From Auanema rhodensis (lineage: Eukaryota > Animalia > Nematoda): a stretch of DNA of 64,000 nt. Below, piece after piece: positions 9,400 through 21,063 of this stretch. Position 1 is the stretch's first letter. Each line of letters starts with the position of its first letter. Location of the stretch: assembly GCA_964057225.1 (NCBI GenBank), contig OZ059896.1, positions 12,834,001 through 12,898,000 of the forward strand, given 5' to 3'. The notes under the pieces were generated by a model. It was not told the DNA's origin, did no database searches, and was given only the letters and a program-made list of their open reading frames with translations. Position numbers and translations under genes: made by a program.

Positions 9400-9705
9400 T
9401 GTCGCTTCGGCGAAGGTATTCCGTGTGATAGTTTTCCGCTGAGAATCGAATAACAAATAATCAGTGGTAGAATGCTTTATTAAAGAACTAACAATTCAAC
9501 AAAATATAGATCGTCTATAGTCCGTTGAGGTTTGGTTGAGGTATATCTTGTATTTTTCGATCCCAAAGATGAAGATATAGGAAGGCGGGCCGAAAAGTAC
9601 AATCTGAAATAGACAAAGTAAAGAAAAACGATAAAAACAAAACTGAAATGGAACAAAACATAGAAAAAAAGATAAAAAAAGAAAAAATAATCGCTAACCG
9701 CGACA
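9400..9705 (-). repeat. 5' LTR of BEL 1 (306 bp)
   Basis: Perfect 6-bp inverted termini TGTCGC...GCGACA, AATAAA (minus) near 9477-9482, adjacent PBS; the tRNA-unit flank resumes at 9706. Confidence 0.82.
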
Positions 9706-9758
9706 AAAAGGGAGGATTGAATCTCATATATGACAATTCTCTTGTGAGATATTACAGT

Positions 9759-9830
9759 GGTTCCGTGGTGTAGTGGTTAGCACTCAGGACTCTGAATCCT
9801 GCGACCCGAGTTCAAATCTCGGCGGAACCT
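9759..9830 (+). tRNA. tRNA-Gln-CTG: tRNA-Gln (anticodon CTG), intact
   Basis: 72 nt, GGTTCCG/CGGAACC acceptor stem, A box TGGTGTAGTGG, CAGGA-CTCTGAA-TCCTG anticodon arm, GTTCAAATC T-loop, oligo-T terminator at 9836-9841. Confidence 0.97.
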
Positions 9831-10610
9831 TCAACTTTTTTATGTTTCTTTAGTTTTTGTCTGGAACTTTGAGTATTCGAAAATAAATATTTACTACACT
9901 AGCAAGCGGAAGAAAACCTTATACTAGTTCATTGTTTTTTTTTAAATTTGTTTCGGTATATTTATTTTTTCACTCTCAAATCGGCAAGCACCTGCTGCAC
10001 ATGTGCGAGTATTCGAGTAACCGATGCCCAAACGAGCCACGCTTAGAAAATGAGGCTGACATAACACGTTTTTCACTCCTACCCAGATTGATTGCTTTAG
10101 AGACATTCCTGTCTTATCTCATTATATTCTCTATTTTGATTTTTCTAAATTTTCATTAATGTATAATTCAAACTGTAATTTCTTGTGATCAGATTGTTAA
10201 TCGTTATATCTGTGAACGTTTCTCGCAAAATAGTAAGTAGAGTGTTCAGTTGTGCCCACTCAACAAAGAAAGTAGAAGAACACATATATTTAGAGCAAAA
10301 AAAGTGCGGAAAAGTCGTTATCTCGTTAACATCAGTTTCACTGCCCAAAACTCTGTTTCTTAATGTCCGAGGTCATATGATGAAATCTAATTTCGCACTT
10401 AGTTGTTGAAAATCAAACAAGATTCTTCTCAATTGACCACAACTACAGCACCAAACTTGGAAAAGTACAATCAGCTGAGTTCAAACTTCGAGAAAGTTAA
10501 AATTTCGAATCTCCTCTCAATCATTTTGTTCCTCCTTCTTTCTTTTTTGTTTTACACAAAAGGGAGGATTAAATCTCATATATGACAATTCTCTTGTGAG
10601 AAATTACAGT

Positions 10611-10620
10611 GGTTCCGTGG
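10611..10620 (+). pseudogene. 5' 10 nt of a second tRNA-Gln copy, cut inside the A box
   Basis: GGTTCCGTGG with about 50 bp of conserved upstream flank, followed by unrelated sequence. Confidence 0.85.
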
Positions 10621-13600
10621 GCCTTTAAACATTGACCCAAGTCACAAAGACCCAATCATTACCCCATCCTCACCCGTTGCTGGAAATATCACAAGCACCC
10701 CTGGACACAATACCCCATTATGACCCTATCATGTACACCCCTATTTTGTTTAGAACGAACACAATTTAAGTAACCGGTATCATTTCCTTTATCCCCTGCA
10801 TCCTTTGATTATTTACATATATTCAACAAAGGGTTAGCATAAATCATTAATTTTTCTTTATTCGTGTTTTAGGTTCACTTTTGATGAGATTCTTCCAAGC
10901 ATTCCATATCATGAAGTATTCCAAAAAGGTACAACAATTACTTACATTGTTCAGAAAGATGCTTTCAAGCATATTTTGGATATAACGCAAGATTGGTACA
11001 GTTCCTGGTCAGGATGCGGTTGTATGTTTTCAAAAGTTTTATTAAAACTAAATTCCTTGTTAAAGATAATGAGAAAAAAATGCTAGTCTCTAACAAAACT
11101 AAAACTAATCCCAAAAATCTTATTTTTGACGACAATTCCCAAACGTATATAGCCGTTGATTTCGAAAATGATGTGAAACTGAAAATTTTCAAAAACCAAC
11201 ACCCGAAAAATTGTTTTCTGAGACGAGAAGTAGATAATACTGCATTTAAAAAAAATTTTTTATTTTTAGATTGCTTACATCGCGAATAAGAACGTTGTAT
11301 TGACTCCCATCATTTTTTCGTATACTGCAACGGTATTTTGTTATAAATAGTTTTTTTTTAATTATTTAAAGCCTATGAAGAATGACGTTTTTGTACATTG
11401 GGCTAATTGTGAAAAGCGAATTTTGCCGTCTTTATCCATCGATGTAAAATCAGCAATGGAATATCGCACTACTGCTGAGACAAAAAGATCTATTTCTGCT
11501 TTTCATGAATCTCCAATAAGTACGAAACAAGCACGTATATTTGTTTTTTTTCAGTTTCACTTATATTATTTTAGATAAACAGTTTATCACGCAATGTGAA
11601 AAACCATGTTAAGTCCAGATGTGGAAGACGAGAATTAACAGATTCATCGAAATTAATGGATCGCTTTATTAATCATAACTCCCATTTAGAAGATATGCTC
11701 CCCATTAACATGAATCGGCCTGAGAATGGAGGTTAAAAATTACAGAACTTTTAGATATGAATAAGATATGGTCAGACATTGATATGAAATTTATAATTGG
11801 ATACCCTGTTGCGATGAAATGTTTCTTGAAAGATCTACCTACTAACTGCGAGTTAAATGAGCATAGAGAAATGGTTGAGCGTTTCATGACAATGGAAGAA
11901 TCAGATGCTGATACTATTTTCAGTTAGTTATTGTTCATTACATAAGCATATTCAACACTTAGACAAGCACTTGCAATGGGTAAACAAATCAGGTTCATTG
12001 CCTGTAATTGGTTCAAGTTTGTTAATTGATACTACTTTTGATTTGAGTGATATGTATCTTACTATTGCATTGGGATTGAGTGAAACATTCTTGTGAGTAT
12101 TATTTTTAATATTATATATAGCATACTTTGTAGAACCAAATCTTCTGGAAAAAATTGTGGCATTATATTAGCTGTGTTGTTTCATACAAAGAAGAATAAA
12201 GAAGCGCATGAATATTTTGCTCAATATTTAAATTTGAAACTCTACTCTTTTTCGACTGAGAAACGCATTGGCACTATTCTTACAGATGGTGAAGAAGCTC
12301 TTTCTGTGTACAAATCGGTAATTGATTCTATCAAGACTATTTTAAAGTTGCTCCAGGGACTAGTCATGAAAGATGCACTACATATCCGCTGCGATATGCA
12401 TCGTTTACAAAACGTTAAAGAAATTGTTGGTCCTGGAGAGCAGTTCGATAAAATTAAAAATGTGCTGTATGGGTATAAAGAAAAAGTTGCTTCCGAAAAG
12501 TTGCTTTTATTATTGAACAAGTTTTTCAGACATCAGAAGAACTGATATTACTGAAAGGTATCCTTGGAAGTCTAAATTGGAACTCGTATGAACGGCGTTG
12601 GAATAACTTCAGAGATGGTTGCGAAGGACGTCTACGAGATTGGTGATACTGGAGTCATGTTCAAATTAAACTTATCAAATTTAGGCTTGACAACGAACTT
12701 ATTAGAAAGTAGAAACAACTATTTGAAAAACCACATAACTAGTTCACTACCTGCAGACCGTGTCGCTGATATTTTATTACATCTACACAAAGGTAGGTGT
12801 TCGATAATATTGGAAAGTCATTCCTAATTATAGAGGAGGTGAAAAATCGCATCAAAGTAATCCGGAATATTTCTGATACAATCACCACTCATAACGTTAT
12901 CAATTACTACCAATGGAAAGCGATGAGCAAAATGGAGAAAAACCATATTTTAAAAAATTTTGGATTAGAAGACTACTTCAACATAGGCAAATACATTGAA
13001 TACCCTTCATGGATTCTCAAAGGTTAGAATCATTTAGAAATTTGAACATGGTATAGTTTTCAAGCCGATGGCAAAACTACGGAGGATGCTTTTCTGTCTT
13101 CTATTGAAAAACTTGTTGTTCACAACACTGACAATAATGCAAAAATCTCATTTGTCATAGAGGATGATAATTTCACAAAGTCGGTGGTGAATTAACATTG
13201 TAATTTCAGTTTGTTAATTACATTTAGTGTTGCTGCCGTTATACTTAAAGAAAATCAGCTTCGTTGTTACTCAATTGAATGTATGAAAAATATCAATTAT
13301 TCTTATTTTTTTCGCAAACATATGTATTCAAGCATAACTTAAGATATGTAATATTCTTTTTCTTATTAGGTTTGTTGTTATGGAACGTGTTGCACGTTTT
13401 TTACTCCTACCCAGATTGATAAGTGCAAAATTAGATATCATCATATGACCTCGGACATTAAGAAACAGAGTTTTGGGCAGTGAAACTGATGTTAACGAGA
13501 TAACAACTTTTCCGCACTTTAAACAGTTTATCACGCAATGTGAAAAACCATGTTAAGTCCAGATGTGGAAGACGAGAATTAACAGATTCATCGAAATTAA

Positions 13601-16600
13601 TGGATCGCTTTATTAATCATAACTCCCATTTAGAAGATATGCTCCCCATTAACATGAATCGGCCTGAGAATGGAGGTTAAAAATTACAGAACTTTTAGAT
13701 ATGAATAAGATATGGTCAGACATTGATATGAAATTTATAATTGGATACCCTGTTGCGATGAAATGTTTCTTGAAAGATCTACCTACTAACTGCGAGTTAA
13801 ATGAGCATAGAGAAATGGTTGAGCGTTTCATGACAATGGAAGAATCAGATGCTGATACTATTTTCAGTTAGTTATTGTTCATTACATAAGCATATTCAAC
13901 ACTTAGACAAGCACTTGCAATGGGTAAACAAATCAGGTTCATTGCCTGTAATTGGTTCAAGTTTGTTAATTGATACTACTTTTGATTTGAGTGATATGTA
14001 TCTTACTATTGCATTGGGATTAAGTGAAACATTCTTGTGAGTATTATTTTTAATATTATATATAGCATACTTTGTAGAACCAAATCTTCTGGAAAAAATT
14101 GTGGCATTATATTAGCTGTGTTGTTTCATACAAAGAAGAATAAAGAAGCGCATGAATATTTTGCTCAATATTTAAATTTGAAACTCTACTCTTTTTCGAC
14201 TGAGAAACGCATTGGCACTATTCTTACAGATGGTGAAGAAGCTCTTTCTGTGTACAAATCGGTAATTGATTCTATCAAGACTATTTTAAAGTTGCTCCAG
14301 GGACTAGTCATGAAAGATGCACTACATATCCGCTGCGATATGCATCGTTTACAAAACGTTAAAGAAATTGTTGGTCCTGGAGAGCAGTTCGATAAAATTA
14401 AAAATGTGCTGTATGGGTATAAAGAAAAAGTTGCTTCCGAAAAGTTGCTTTTATTATTGAACAAGTTTTTCAGACATCAGAAGAACTGATATTACTGAAA
14501 GGTATCCTTGGAAGTCTAAATTGGAACTCGTATGAACGGCGTTGGAATAACTTCAGAGATGGTTGCGAAGGACGTCTACGAGATTGGTGATACTGGAGTC
14601 ATGTTCAAATTAAACTTATCAAATTTAGGCTTGACAACGAACTTATTAGAAAGTAGAAACAACTATTTGAAAAACCACATAACTAGTTCACTACCTGCAG
14701 ACCGTGTCGCTGATATTTTATTACATCTACACAAAGGTAGGTGTTCGATAATATTGGAAAGTCATTCCTAATTATAGAGGAGGTGAAAAATCGCATCAAA
14801 GTAATCCGGAATATTTCTGATACAATCACCACTCATAACGTTATCAATTACTACCAATGGAAAGCGATGAGCAAAATGGAGAAAAACCATATTTTAAAAA
14901 ATTTTGGATTAGAAGACTACTTCAACATAGGCAAATACATTGAATACCCTTCATGGATTCTCAAAGGTTAGAATCATTTAGAAATTTGAACATGGTATAG
15001 TTTTCAAGCCAATGGCAAAACTACGGAGGATGCTTTTCTGTCTTCTATTGAAAAACTTGTTGTTCACAACACTGACAATAATGCAAAAATCTCATTTGTC
15101 ATAGAGGATGATAATTTCACAAAGTCGGTGGTGAATTAACATTGTAATTTCAGTTTGTTAATTACATTTAGTGTTGCTGCCGTTATACTTAAAGAAAATC
15201 AGCTTCGTTGTTACTCAATTGAATGTATGAAAAATATCAATTATTCTTATTTTTTTCGCAAACATATGTATTCAAGCATAACTTAAGATATGTAATATTC
15301 TTTTTCTTATTAGGTTTGTTGTTATGGAACGTGTTGCACGTTTTTTACTCCTACCCAGATTGATAAGTGCAAAATTAGATATCATCATATGACCTCGGAC
15401 ATTAAGAAACAGAGTTTTGGGCAGTGAAACTGATGTTAACGAGATAACAACTTTTCCGCACTTTAAACAGTTTATCACGCAATGTGAAAAACCATGTTAA
15501 GTCCAGATGTGGAAGACGAGAATTAACAGATTCATCGAAATTAATGGATCGCTTTATTAATCATAACTCCCATTTAGAAGATATGCTCCCCATTAACATG
15601 AATCGGCCTGAGAATGGAGGTTAAAAATTACAGAACTTTTAGATATGAATAAGATATGGTCAGACATTGATATGAAATTTATAATTGGATACCCTGTTGC
15701 GATGAAATGTTTCTTGAAAGATCTACCTACTAACTGCGAGTTAAATGAGCATAGAGAAATGGTTGAGCGTTTCATGACAATGGAAGAATCAGATGCTGAT
15801 ACTATTTTCAGTTAGTTATTGTTCATTACATAAGCATATTCAACACTTAGACAAGCACTTGCAATGGGTAAACAAATCAGGTTCATTGCCTGTAATTGGT
15901 TCAAGTTTGTTAATTGATACTACTTTTGATTTGAGTGATATGTATCTTACTATTGCATTGGGATTAAGTGAAACATTCTTGTGAGTATTATTTTTAATAT
16001 TATATATAGCATACTTTGTAGAACCAAATCTTCTGGAAAAAATTGTGGCATTATATTAGCTGTGTTGTTTCATACAAAGAAGAATAAAGAAGCGCATGAA
16101 TATTTTGCTCAATATTTAAATTTGAAACTCTACTCTTTTTCGACTGAGAAACGCATTGGCACTATTCTTACAGATGGTGAAGAAGCTCTTTCTGTGTACA
16201 AATCGGTAATTGATTCTATCAAGACTATTTTAAAGTTGCTCCAGGGACTAGTCATGAAAGATGCACTACATATCCGCTGCGATATGCATCGTTTACAAAA
16301 CGTTAAAGAAATTGTTGGTCCTGGAGAGCAGTTCGATAAAATTAAAAATGTGCTGTATGGGTATAAAGAAAAAGTTGCTTCCGAAAAGTTGCTTTTATTA
16401 TTGAACAAGTTTTTCAGACATCAGAAGAACTGATATTACTGAAAGGTATCCTTGGAAGTCTAAATTGGAACTCGTATGAACGGCGTTGGAATAACTTCAG
16501 AGATGGTTGCGAAGGACGTCTACGAGATTGGTGATACTGGAGTCATGTTCAAATTAAACTTATCAAATTTAGGCTTGACAACGAACTTATTAGAAAGTAG

Positions 16601-17280
16601 AAACAACTATTTGAAAAACCACATAACTAGTTCACTACCTGCAGACCGTGTCGCTGATATTTTATTACATCTACACAAAGGTAGGTGTTCGATAATATTG
16701 GAAAGTCATTCCTAATTATAGAGGAGGTGAAAAATCGCATCAAAGTAATCCGGAATATTTCTGATACAATCACCACTCATAACGTTATCAATTACTACCA
16801 ATGGAAAGCGATGAGCAAAATGGAGAAAAACCATATTTTAAAAAATTTTGGATTAGAAGACTACTTCAACATAGGCAAATACATTGAATACCCTTCATGG
16901 ATTCTCAAAGGTTAGAATCATTTAGAAATTTGAACATGGTATAGTTTTCAAGCCGATGGCAAAACTACGGAGGATGCTTTTCTGTCTTCTATTGAAAAAC
17001 TTGTTGTTCACAACACTGACAATAATGCAAAAATCTCATTTGTCATAGAGGATGATAATTTCACAAAGTCGGTGGTGAATTAACATTGTAATTTCAGTTT
17101 GTTAATTACATTTAGTGTTGCTGCCGTTATACTTAAAGAAAATCAGCTTCGTTGTTACTCAATTGAATGTATGAAAAATATCAATTATTCTTATTTTTTT
17201 CGCAAACATATGTATTCAAGCCTAACTTAAGATATGTAATATTCTTTTTCTTATTAGGTTTGTTGTTATGGAACGTGTTG
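10621..17280 (+). mobile_element. Dada-like (MULE-related) DDE DNA transposon inserted in the tRNA-Gln A box; 3'-truncated, internally triplicated
   Basis: Starts exactly after tRNA nt 10; subterminal ACCC repeats; intron-containing transposase motifs. Confidence 0.72.
10873..13392 (+). pseudogene. spliced DDE transposase, Dada-like (exons repeated at +1944 and +3888)
   Basis: IDTTFDL (12028), AVLFHTKK, LTDGEEAL (12285), HIRCDMH (CxxH, about 12390), TTNLLESRNNYLK (about 12690), and a degenerate C-terminal C-x3-C..RKH finger (about 13265-13320); short GT..TTTAG introns. Confidence 0.8.
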
Positions 17281-17408
17281 CACGTTTTTTACTCCTACCC
17301 AGATTGATAAGTGCAAAATTAGATATCATCATATGACCTCGGACATTAAGAAACAGAGTTTTGGGCAGTGAAACTGATGTTAACGAGATAACAACTTTTC
17401 CGCACTTT
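11576..17408 (+). repeat. near-perfect tandem triplication, 3 x 1944 bp
   Basis: Identical ORF sets at 12093, 14037 and 15981; I saw only three substitutions among the copies. Confidence 0.97.
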
Positions 17409-17906
17409 TTTTGCTCTAAATATATATGTTCTTCTACTTTCTTTGTTAAGTGGGTACAACTGAACACTCTACTTGCTTTTTCGAGAGAAACGTTTACAGA
17501 TATATCGATTAACAATCTGATCACAAGAAATTACATTTTGAATTATACATTAATGAAAATTTAGAAAAATCAAAGTAGAGAATATAATGAGATAAGACAG
17601 AAATGTCTCTAGAGCAATCAATCTGGGTAGGAGTAAAAAACGTGTTATGTCAGCCTCATTTTCTAAACGTGGCTTGTTTGGGCATCGGTTACTGGAATAG
17701 CTCGCACATGTGCAGCATGTGCTTGCCGATTTGACAGTGAAAAAATAAATATACCGAAAAAAACTAAAAGAAACAATAAACTAGTATAAGGTTTTCTTCT
17801 GCTTGCTAGTGTAGTAAATATTCATCTTCGAAGACTCAAAGTTCCAGACAAAAACTAAAGAGAATCTGTGAAACATATATCGGCCAAAACAAAATACAAA
17901 AGTTGA

Positions 17907-18248
17907 AGGTTCCGCCGAGATTTGAACTCGGGTTTTTGAAGATAGAGGGCTCTTCAAATAGCCTCCCAGGTTCACACTTTCTATTCTATGCCCTGTTTAC
18001 ATAAAAGACTATTATAAAAAGAAAGATTCATTAAGATAACATACATATACTACATCATACGCTACAAAGACTGGAATAATTATAAGAAGACTAGATAGAC
18101 ATTGCCAAGTAAACTAAAGATGGTTATACGAAAGGGCAAGTAGGAAAACGGTGGTTCAGACTAGATGAGTCATACGATATTCCGCCGAGATTTGAACTTG
18201 GGTCGCAGGATTCAGAGTCCTGAGTGCTAACCACTACACCACGGAACC
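17907..18248 (-). pseudogene. tRNA-Gln(CTG) copy disrupted at its 3' end by an insertion
   Basis: 18180-18248 holds tRNA nt 1-69 (lacking the final CCT); 17907-17933 holds the duplicated 3' end, followed by the normal downstream flank. Confidence 0.9.
17934..18179. mobile_element. 246-bp insertion flanked by a 24-bp direct duplication of the tRNA T-arm; origin unknown, LTR-like composition
   Basis: TTCCGCCGAGATTTGAACT(C/T)GGGT at 17910-17933 and 18180-18203; absent from the intact unit. Confidence 0.7.
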
Positions 18249-18310
18249 ACTGTAATCTGTCACAAGAGAATTGTCATATATGAGATTCAATCATCCCTCA
18301 ACGCACCCAT

Positions 18311-20072
18311 GTGGACTACCCAGCAACTTGGTTGGAATTATACCAAGGTAGCTATAAAAGGATGTTGGTCAAATACCCTCAAGCCCATAAGACCATGAAA
18401 GCTCATGAAATCGACCAACTTGTCACCAAAGACATTGGCGAAGAACATCCGCCCACAGTTGCAAAACTGATCAAGGGCATTTTGGACTATTGCGATGAGA
18501 GAGATCTCATGGTGAACACAGGCGAAGTTGAGGAATATACTCAACTTATCCAACTTCGCCGAGATGATCTCGATGACTATCAGAGTTTATTTGACTCTAC
18601 AGAACATGACTCAACAACATTGAAAAATCACATGAACAGAATGAAATACTCCAGAAAAAACTTAGAGATGAGTTTCTTTTCTGGAATACAAAAACATTTG
18701 AACATCACACCAGATAGAGCACGACGACACAGAACACAAAGTACAAGTTCTGATGAAATCGGTTCCACACAAAGACAACTTGCTCAAAAACGAGTGTACA
18801 CTATTCGAGCAAACAATAGTGACGTTATGATCGCATCTCCTCAGCACGATATTTCAATGCTTGAACCAAACAGTACCTCCACTCTTTTGAACGATGACCT
18901 AATGCCGATATCAGAAAATGATCTTGTTCATTCTTTTAACAATCTGAGTACTGGTTCTAATAGCTTGGAAAGATCTAGAGCGGATGCTGACAATGTTGGA
19001 GCCCCACTTGGAGCAGCTAATAAGCGGAAAGCTCTCTCACCATTCAGACACGCGCACTACTATTCTTGACCAATTACAGTCGAACAACATACAAACAATG
19101 CTCCCCATCATTGGTCAACTATGCAACAGAACATAGCACGACAATCTTTGATCCCACCTACTGTACAAACATCAATACTCACGCCTCGTCTTCCAACAGT
19201 TAAAATACCACATTTCAACGGTAATCCAGAAGACTTTCTTGGATTTTGGGAGTTGTTCACAGCAGTTGTTGATGTTTAACCCTTGTCAGAGATTGAAAAG
19301 TTTTCCATTTTGCTCGACAAACTTTCTGGTCAAGCGGAAGAATGTTTACTGTCTCTTCGATACTACATACGATCCGCAAAGCTGATCAAGCTGAGCCCCA
19401 AAAGCATTGCAACTTGAAGAAGCCGATAAAAACGCAATGAGTCAGAGAAATAGCAACACTGTTCATATTGCAGCTGGACAACTACACACTAGTCGGCGAG
19501 AACAGGTCAATAACCAGAAGTGCAATCTCTGTCTTGGCAATCATTCTCCCACCAAATGTTATTCTATTCAATCGGTAGAAGAGAAGAAGAAGATAGCTGT
19601 ATCCAAACAGCTATGCTTCAATTGTTTTTCAAAGACACACTCAGCCATTGGATGTCACGCACCGAATTGTCACCGCTGTGACAAAACACATCATGAGTCT
19701 CTGTGTCAACGCGATTCTCGCTCCCGGAGTAATAGTAGGACTAGAACTCACTCGAAGGATAGGATGAATCGGCATCCACCACAAACGTACAAAGGTTTTG
19801 AGGCTAATACAAGAAGATCACCTCATCGGAACAACGAAAACAACAGAGAAAACCGCAGTGCGTCTATAAAACAATATAGAGCTCACTCCTCACGCCAACA
19901 TATCTTGACTGCTACTGCACTCACTAACCCTTACGACCACATTTCAAATACACCAGGACCAGTCAATGACAAGGCCTTTGAATTCAGAAGAAACCACGTT
20001 GGAGTAGTCAGTGTGACAGTATTTGATTGCCACGGTAACCCACATCATGTATACGCCTTGTTGGATTTGTGA
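18311..20072 (+). pseudogene. gag: BEL 2 gag and start of protease
   Basis: Coiled-coil N-terminus, DUF1759-type motif at about 19190-19350, CNLCLGNHSPTKC / CFNCFSKTHSAIGC / CHRCDKTHHESLC. Confidence 0.85.
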
Positions 20073-21063
20073 TCACAACTAGCCACCGTACGTAGAGAGT
20101 TGATCAACCGCTTGTACGCATGAGAATGGAAACCGCGGGAGAACAATCTTTTCTTGAAGACACTCAAGCTATTATGATCGATCTCTACAATAACGATGGA
20201 GCGTGCATATCTGCCCCATGCATTATAATGGATAAGGTTTTCTTTCAGCCATTTAACCGCAACACTGTTCATATTGCAGCTGGACAACTACACACTAGTC
20301 GGCGAGAACAGGTCAATAACCAGAAGTGCAATCTCTGTCTTGGCAATCATTCTCCCACCAAATGTTATTCTATTCAATCGGTAGAAGAGAAGAAGAAGAT
20401 AGCTGTATCCAAACAGCTATGCTTCAAATGTTTTTCAATGACACACTCAGCCATTGGATGTCACGCACCGAATTGTCACCGCTGTGACAAAACACATCAT
20501 GAGTCTCTGTGTCAACGCGATTCTCGCTTCCGGAGTAATAGTAGGACTAGAACTCACTCGAAGGATAGGATGAATCGGCATCCACCACAAACGTACAAAG
20601 GTTTTGAGGCTAATACAAGAAGATCACCTCATCGGAACAACGAAAACAACAGAGAAAACCGCAGTGCGTCTATAAAACAATACAGAGCTCACTCCTCACG
20701 CCAACATATCTTGACTGCTACTGCACTCACTAACCCTTACGACCACATTTCAAATACACCAGGACCAGTCAATGACAAGGCCTTTGAATTCAGAAGAAAC
20801 CACGTTGGAGTAGTCAGTGTGACAGTATTTGATTGCCACGGTAACCCACACCATGTATACGCCTTGTTGGATTTGTGATCACAACTAGCCACCGTACGTA
20901 GAGAGTTGATCAACCGCTTGTACGCATGAGAATGGAAACCGCGGGAGAACAATCTTTTCTTAAAGACACTCAAGCTATTATGATCGATCTCTACAATAAC
21001 GATGGAGCGTGCATATCTGCCCCATGCATTATAATGGATAAGGTTCTTTCAGCCATTTAACCG
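19453..21063 (+). repeat. 806-bp tandem duplication inside BEL 2
   Basis: 19453-20258 repeated at 20259-21063; both copies share the TGA next to the protease catalytic motif. Confidence 0.95.

Follow-up and report, generated by a model that had tools for sequence, protein, structure and literature searches.

A fossil, probably MULE-type DNA transposon with its left end in the A box of a nematode tRNA-Gln gene

The stretch of DNA analysed here (the window, 64 kb in length) contains, at positions 10621-13385, what is very probably a fossil copy of a very divergent MULE-type DNA transposon, and not of a Dada element. On its left side it borders immediately on nt 9-10 of a single tRNA-Gln(CTG) gene, the A box of which is destroyed. 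This copy is immobile and non-coding: it bears three frame-breaking lesions, and its right terminal inverted repeat (TIR) is gone. A preliminary description had read the locus as an intron-containing DDE transposon that starts on the left at nt 9-10 of tRNA-Gln and has lost its right end; this part holds, while the accompanying assignment to Dada does not. The features of the locus are collected in Table 1.

Table 1. Features of the tRNA-Gln units, the element and its surroundings (window positions)
Feature	Position	Strand	Basis or remark
Upstream flank, conserved, of the unit A tRNA-Gln	9703-9758		repeated within 10554-10620
tRNA-Gln(CTG) gene, unit A, intact; reference for the cut copy	9759-9830	+	ARAGORN; Rfam RF00005, 67.4 bits
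Spacer of the tRNA-Gln repeat unit, very high-copy	9847-10401	+	inverted copy at 17308-17861 (94%); word depth, four runs
Unit B: tRNA nt 1-10 (10611-10620), preceded by 57 nt of the upstream flank of tRNA-Gln	10554-10620	+	self-comparison
Left TIR, about 120 nt, with most of the ACCC cluster	10621-10740	+	repeat count, X4 contig, analogy to L001
MULE-like transposase pseudogene, 13 exons	10720-13195	+	tblastn of P0001 along the whole length, and splice model
Exon 1	10720-10769	+	ATG at 10720
Exon 2	10873-11018	+	
Exon 3	11066-11229	+	
Exon 4	11270-11332	+	
Exon 5	11372-11519	+	
Exon 6	11575-11731	+	
Exon 7	11746-11922	+	
Exon 8	11963-12092	+	
Exon 9	12134-12485	+	
Exon 10	12530-12643	+	
Exon 11	12644-12792	+	
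Exon 12	12834-13022	+	
Exon 13	13065-13195	+	stop codon 13193-13195
3' subterminal region, up to the expected start of the right TIR	13196-13385	+	stop codon 13193-13195; X4 joint at 13385
Scar replacing the right TIR	13386-13520	+	self-BLAST
Tandem triplication of a 1,944-bp unit (11576-13392 of the element together with the scar; block 11576-13519)	11576-17407	+	99.9% identical
Inverted tRNA-Gln unit A'	17308-18298	-	its tRNA is interrupted after nt 69

tRNA-Gln units and the junction

Unit B repeats the upstream flank and the start of the tRNA gene of unit A. In a self-BLAST of the window, 10554-10620 aligns with 9703-9768 at 95.5% identity over 67 nt (E 8e-24), a repeat that, as judged by this comparison of sequences, is far above chance. 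The ten tRNA nucleotides of unit B read GGTTCCGTGG; beyond them the similarity ends, 10621 being a G where the tRNA has a T. Since three G occupy 10619-10621, the break can be placed anywhere from nt 8 to nt 10 of the tRNA, in the A box/D stem. The junction between tRNA and element is present with zero mismatches in contigs from independent public runs, spanning 10572-10783 in run X1 and 10554-10783 in run X4. These contigs, together with the 67-nt alignment, bear out the earlier observation that the second tRNA copy ends at nt 10, inside the A box. Empty sites are found as well, as contigs in which a B-like upstream flank is followed by an uninterrupted tRNA, as with the loose end TGTAGTGGTT at 10620 in X4.

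The spacer at 9847-10401 and 17308-17861 belongs to a satellite-like tRNA-Gln array, its word depth in the four public runs being 100-1000x that of the element. Spacer variants also occur in public runs, as units skipping 10079-10249 or 10191-10544. Although ARAGORN and Rfam report an intact gene, the second tRNA-Gln of the window (17907-18248, minus strand) is cut after nt 69 by 246 bp ending in CAAAAA. After this insert, nt 46-72 of the tRNA occur again, giving a 24-nt duplication on its flanks, and the insert resembles a retroposed fragment that made a long duplication of its target. Just past the inverted tRNA-Gln unit, an 806-bp unit is tandemly duplicated with 99% identity (window 19453-21063).

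The transposase pseudogene and its sole relative

When 1.84 billion cluster representatives were searched exhaustively by HMMER, the core exon matched a single protein, P0001, of 629 residues, from Auanema sp. JU1783 (40% identity, E 1.5e-10). The nematode host deduced in the preliminary description agrees with this origin. Word-indexed protein searches with P0001, whole or restricted to residues 225-545, retrieved nothing beyond P0001 itself; a PDB sequence search gave no match, and a metagenome scan for relatives found none. The lineage is very divergent, and is so far known only from the window copy and from Auanema sp. JU1783.

The matches of P0001 to the window in tblastn are collinear and cover all exons, and it is with guidance from this sole relative that the 13-exon model was built. 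Eleven introns are of GT..AG type, with lengths of 39-103 nt, and one more has collapsed. IDTTF is found at 12025, TDGEEAL at 12282, CDMH at 12390 and TTNLLESRN at 12690, so that the intron-containing DDE transposase described earlier is recovered with its motifs. The first three of these lie in a single open stretch of 310 aa formed by the spliced exons 6-10, and TTNLLESRN is located in exon 11. Three lesions break the frame. The sole good donor of exon 5 (11519) is in phase 1 vs a phase 0 start of exon 6 (11575); the intron at 11732-11745 is reduced to 14 nt, with a stop codon inside; and a frameshift occurs near 12643, at the very point at which an intron and about 12 further codons are present in the Auanema gene. 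No indel variants at the three lesion sites are present in the four public runs. A domesticated gene is rejected as a reading, given the three breaks in the frame and the absence of the gene's words from the RNA runs listed.

Essentially the whole Auanema element is contained in a contig of 3,319 bp (CALQYR020003942.1, hereafter L001). Its TIRs are 121 bp long and identical at 113 of the 121 positions, all mismatches falling within the outer 22 nt. Six GTACAC(C/T) subterminal repeats are found at each end, and the tips read GG(TG/CC)TAGTTAC. A second small annotated gene (2744-3142 of L001, 104 aa, no Pfam match) separates the transposase from the right TIR. The two elements share collinear exons, the 40% core identity, a first exon of 17 aa, the position of an intron after a conserved W, subterminal repeats that are alike in motif, and the tip GGCCT. 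In Auanema nothing is broken, and the 629-aa ORF, both 121-bp TIRs and the second gene are all present, whereas the window copy is broken and possesses neither a right TIR nor a counterpart of the second gene.

Superfamily assignment

Several lines of evidence, namely embeddings, an ESMFold-based comparison, motifs and the TIR architecture, point to a MULE, a call that should be read as a predicted kinship and not as an alignment statistic. In the ESM Atlas, P0001 and the core exon of the window have as neighbours almost exclusively PF10551 MULE, ZSWIM1-3 RNaseH-like or Transposase_mut proteins (score 0.95), and the best ten named neighbours are all MULE. Among predicted structures, every neighbour in the ESMFold-based comparison is a MULE/FAR1 protein, the TM by the hit reaching 0.83. 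Both sets of neighbours are leads drawn from embeddings and predicted models. In P0001, the putative catalytic residues are D302, D376 and E503, with C398xxH401, hence a spacing of D-74-D-127-E. The window and P0001 have in common a D-72/74-D spacing, a CxxH lying after the second D and before the E, and an E within TTNxxESxN. An E in the latter context is typical of MULE/IS256.

When P0001 and the translations of nine exons were scanned with Pfam, no transposase family emerged, the MULE models PF10551 and PF00872 giving no match at E up to 1. Neither a SWIM nor a WRKY finger is detected in P0001, the N-terminus of which has a sub-threshold match to DUF7747. A single-sequence AlphaFold model, with a pLDDT of 32, is not usable. 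Following the earlier suggestion of splicing the exons and comparing them with Dada and with MULE, a splice model was made; the motif contexts differ from those of Dada, and the Pfam MULE model found no match. Mutator-like elements (MuDR, PF10551; the nematode Tm1 of Meloidogyne, PMC3169594) resemble the present element in their long TIRs with subterminal repeats, their DDE spacing and their CxxH; in contrast to them, the window and P0001 sequences are too divergent for the Pfam model. Long TIRs of about 100 bp or more, by which MULEs are recognised, are found in L001 (121 bp), and the left end of the window copy has a like architecture. A TSD of 8-11 bp also marks MULEs; neither of the two copies comes with both of its flanks.

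Membership in the Dada superfamily, as put forward in the preliminary description, is extremely improbable. The likeness consists of introns, of a DDE transposase with a C/DxxH motif, and of a location inside a tRNA gene's A box, where many Dada families also insert; DDE with C/DxxH is, however, common to Dada, MuDR, hAT, P and Kolobok. In the Dada alignment (Dataset S1, PMC3706591), the catalytic residues stand in KMDSTKK, YVDRDCC, DVWH and STSLESFH, and these contexts differ from the I/VDTTF, T/HDGE, CDxH and TTNxxESRN of the window and P0001. Dada transposases exceed 1000 aa (about 1000-1400) and carry two zinc fingers, a CCCC at the N-terminus and a CCHC at the C-terminus (PMC3706591, PMC8869645), whereas the protein found here has about 630 aa, and CCCC/CCHC fingers are absent from P0001, which has 12 scattered Cys in its 629 residues. 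Dada elements, which measure 4.7-11 kb, are devoid of TIRs and have subterminal inverted repeats of 7-9 bp only, and a family's many copies occupy one site of one small-RNA gene, with 6-7-bp TSDs (PMC3706591, PMC8869645). In contrast, the TIRs of L001 reach 121 bp and the nearest neighbours are MULE. The Dada-like identity is thus contradicted by motif contexts, fingers, size, TIRs and neighbours alike.

Ends of the element, its target and its later history

Eight ACCC motifs occur in the 125 nt at 10621-10745, vs 0.17 expected. No other ACCC-like cluster, in either orientation, exists in the 64-kb window, nor does a GGGT cluster marking an inverted TIR. A TIR search between the two ends of the window copy likewise returned none, as expected with the right TIR missing. 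A 687-nt contig of X4 runs through 13257-13385 and continues with the reverse complement of 10740-10674. This joint of 13385 with 10740, one contig joint in one run from a related organism, may be the appearance of an intact right TIR. It would set the inner TIR boundary at 10740 and, therefore, the length of the TIR at about 120 nt, with the tip at 10620/10621, close to the 121 nt of L001. Read from 10620 onwards, the tip GGCCT is the same as that at the right end of L001; the placement of the tip is based on the analogy in length to L001 and on a 5-nt match.

Because the ACCC cluster, the inner boundary and length given by X4, and the GGCCT tip agree, the junction with the tRNA is most likely a true transposon terminus and not a random breakpoint. 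A rearrangement breakpoint, at which the element would have been joined to a 5' fragment of tRNA-Gln by an event like the one that removed its right end, is improbable. The locus is heavily rearranged, having lost the right TIR and acquired a 28-nt piece of spacer, units in inverted orientation and a triplicated block, and the adjacent tRNA-Gln is broken too. However, the break falls at the expected TIR tip, 120 nt from the inner boundary; the tip itself matches that of L001; and the ACCC cluster begins exactly at the junction. The deletion breakpoint that the preliminary description had named as a refuting outcome is disfavoured by these same features.

Taking the junction as a true terminus, it may be asked whether the site was chosen. 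Possibly, although we lean against it, the element belongs to a MULE lineage specific for tRNA genes, a functional analogue of Dada, the transposase of which would recognise the A box/D-arm or the Pol III machinery, the copy in the window being a fossil of a tRNA-Gln family. The terminus does lie inside a 72-nt gene and not in the spacer, which is about ten times as long, and the tip of the left TIR of L001 (positions 1-8, GGTGTAGT) equals nt 9-16 of tRNA-Gln, exactly where the tRNA of the window breaks. However, an 8-mer shared anywhere between the TIRs and the tRNA arises in 24% of shuffles, so that this one, taken as a match at any place, is not significant, curious as its position is, and the window's own TIR has no 7-mer in common with the tRNA. 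The Auanema contig ends at the element and provides no flanks. Furthermore, the case consists of one junction of one element that is about single-copy: nowhere in the stretch is the depth lower than over the element, which follows one contig path per run in the four public runs, with about two further copy-equivalents of the TIR region in X1. The size of the tRNA-Gln array, with a spacer depth 100-1000x that of the element, makes an accumulation without targeting plausible. No tRNA-targeting MULEs were found in the literature searched, in which the only target-specific DNA transposons named are Pokey, some CryptonV families and Dada.

At the right end, the scar is composed of a 7-nt filler, a copy, 28 nt in length, of spacer 10065-10092, which is also 100% identical to 17617-17644 in inverted orientation, and an inverted copy of the spacer 10301-10401. 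The loss of the right end reported earlier is thus confirmed, the 28-nt copy and the inverted tRNA-Gln spacer following after 13385-13392. The triplicated block has a depth of 242 vs 69-110 in X1, where 11576 is also the first position of a contig. In X3 and X4, contigs cross 11576 unbroken, and the triplication would therefore be young and lineage-specific. At 13287-13385, the four runs agree with one another against the window (the base at 13313 is missing, TATG is inserted after 13320, 13329 is T and 13334 is C), through either a strain difference or an error in the window assembly.

A history compatible with these data may be proposed. The element would have been a cut-and-paste Mutator-type (MULE) DNA transposon of roughly 2.9 kb, the transposase of which, as in known MULEs, may have bound the repeated ACCC motifs in the 120-bp TIRs and integrated the element by staggered cuts. 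Its insertion would have taken place behind nt 9-10 in a single tRNA-Gln(CTG) gene of the repeat array. A later rearrangement, possibly of fold-back type, would have replaced the right TIR and the remainder of the tRNA with spacer debris and an inverted tRNA-Gln unit, and 1,944 bp would thereafter have been triplicated in the lineage of the window.

Target-specific DNA transposons are rare. If this MULE lineage does target tRNA genes, it would represent a second, independent origin of the strategy of Dada, with a small transposase of about 630 aa. It is a rather unlikely conjecture that, in rhabditid nematodes with giant tRNA arrays, Mutator-type transposons have independently evolved a Dada-like integration into tRNA genes, the fossil being specific for nt 9-10 of tRNA-Gln and one of several such families. 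The locus itself documents mobile DNA in a tRNA array and a new, very divergent nematode lineage, probably of MULE type, and corrects the assignment to Dada.
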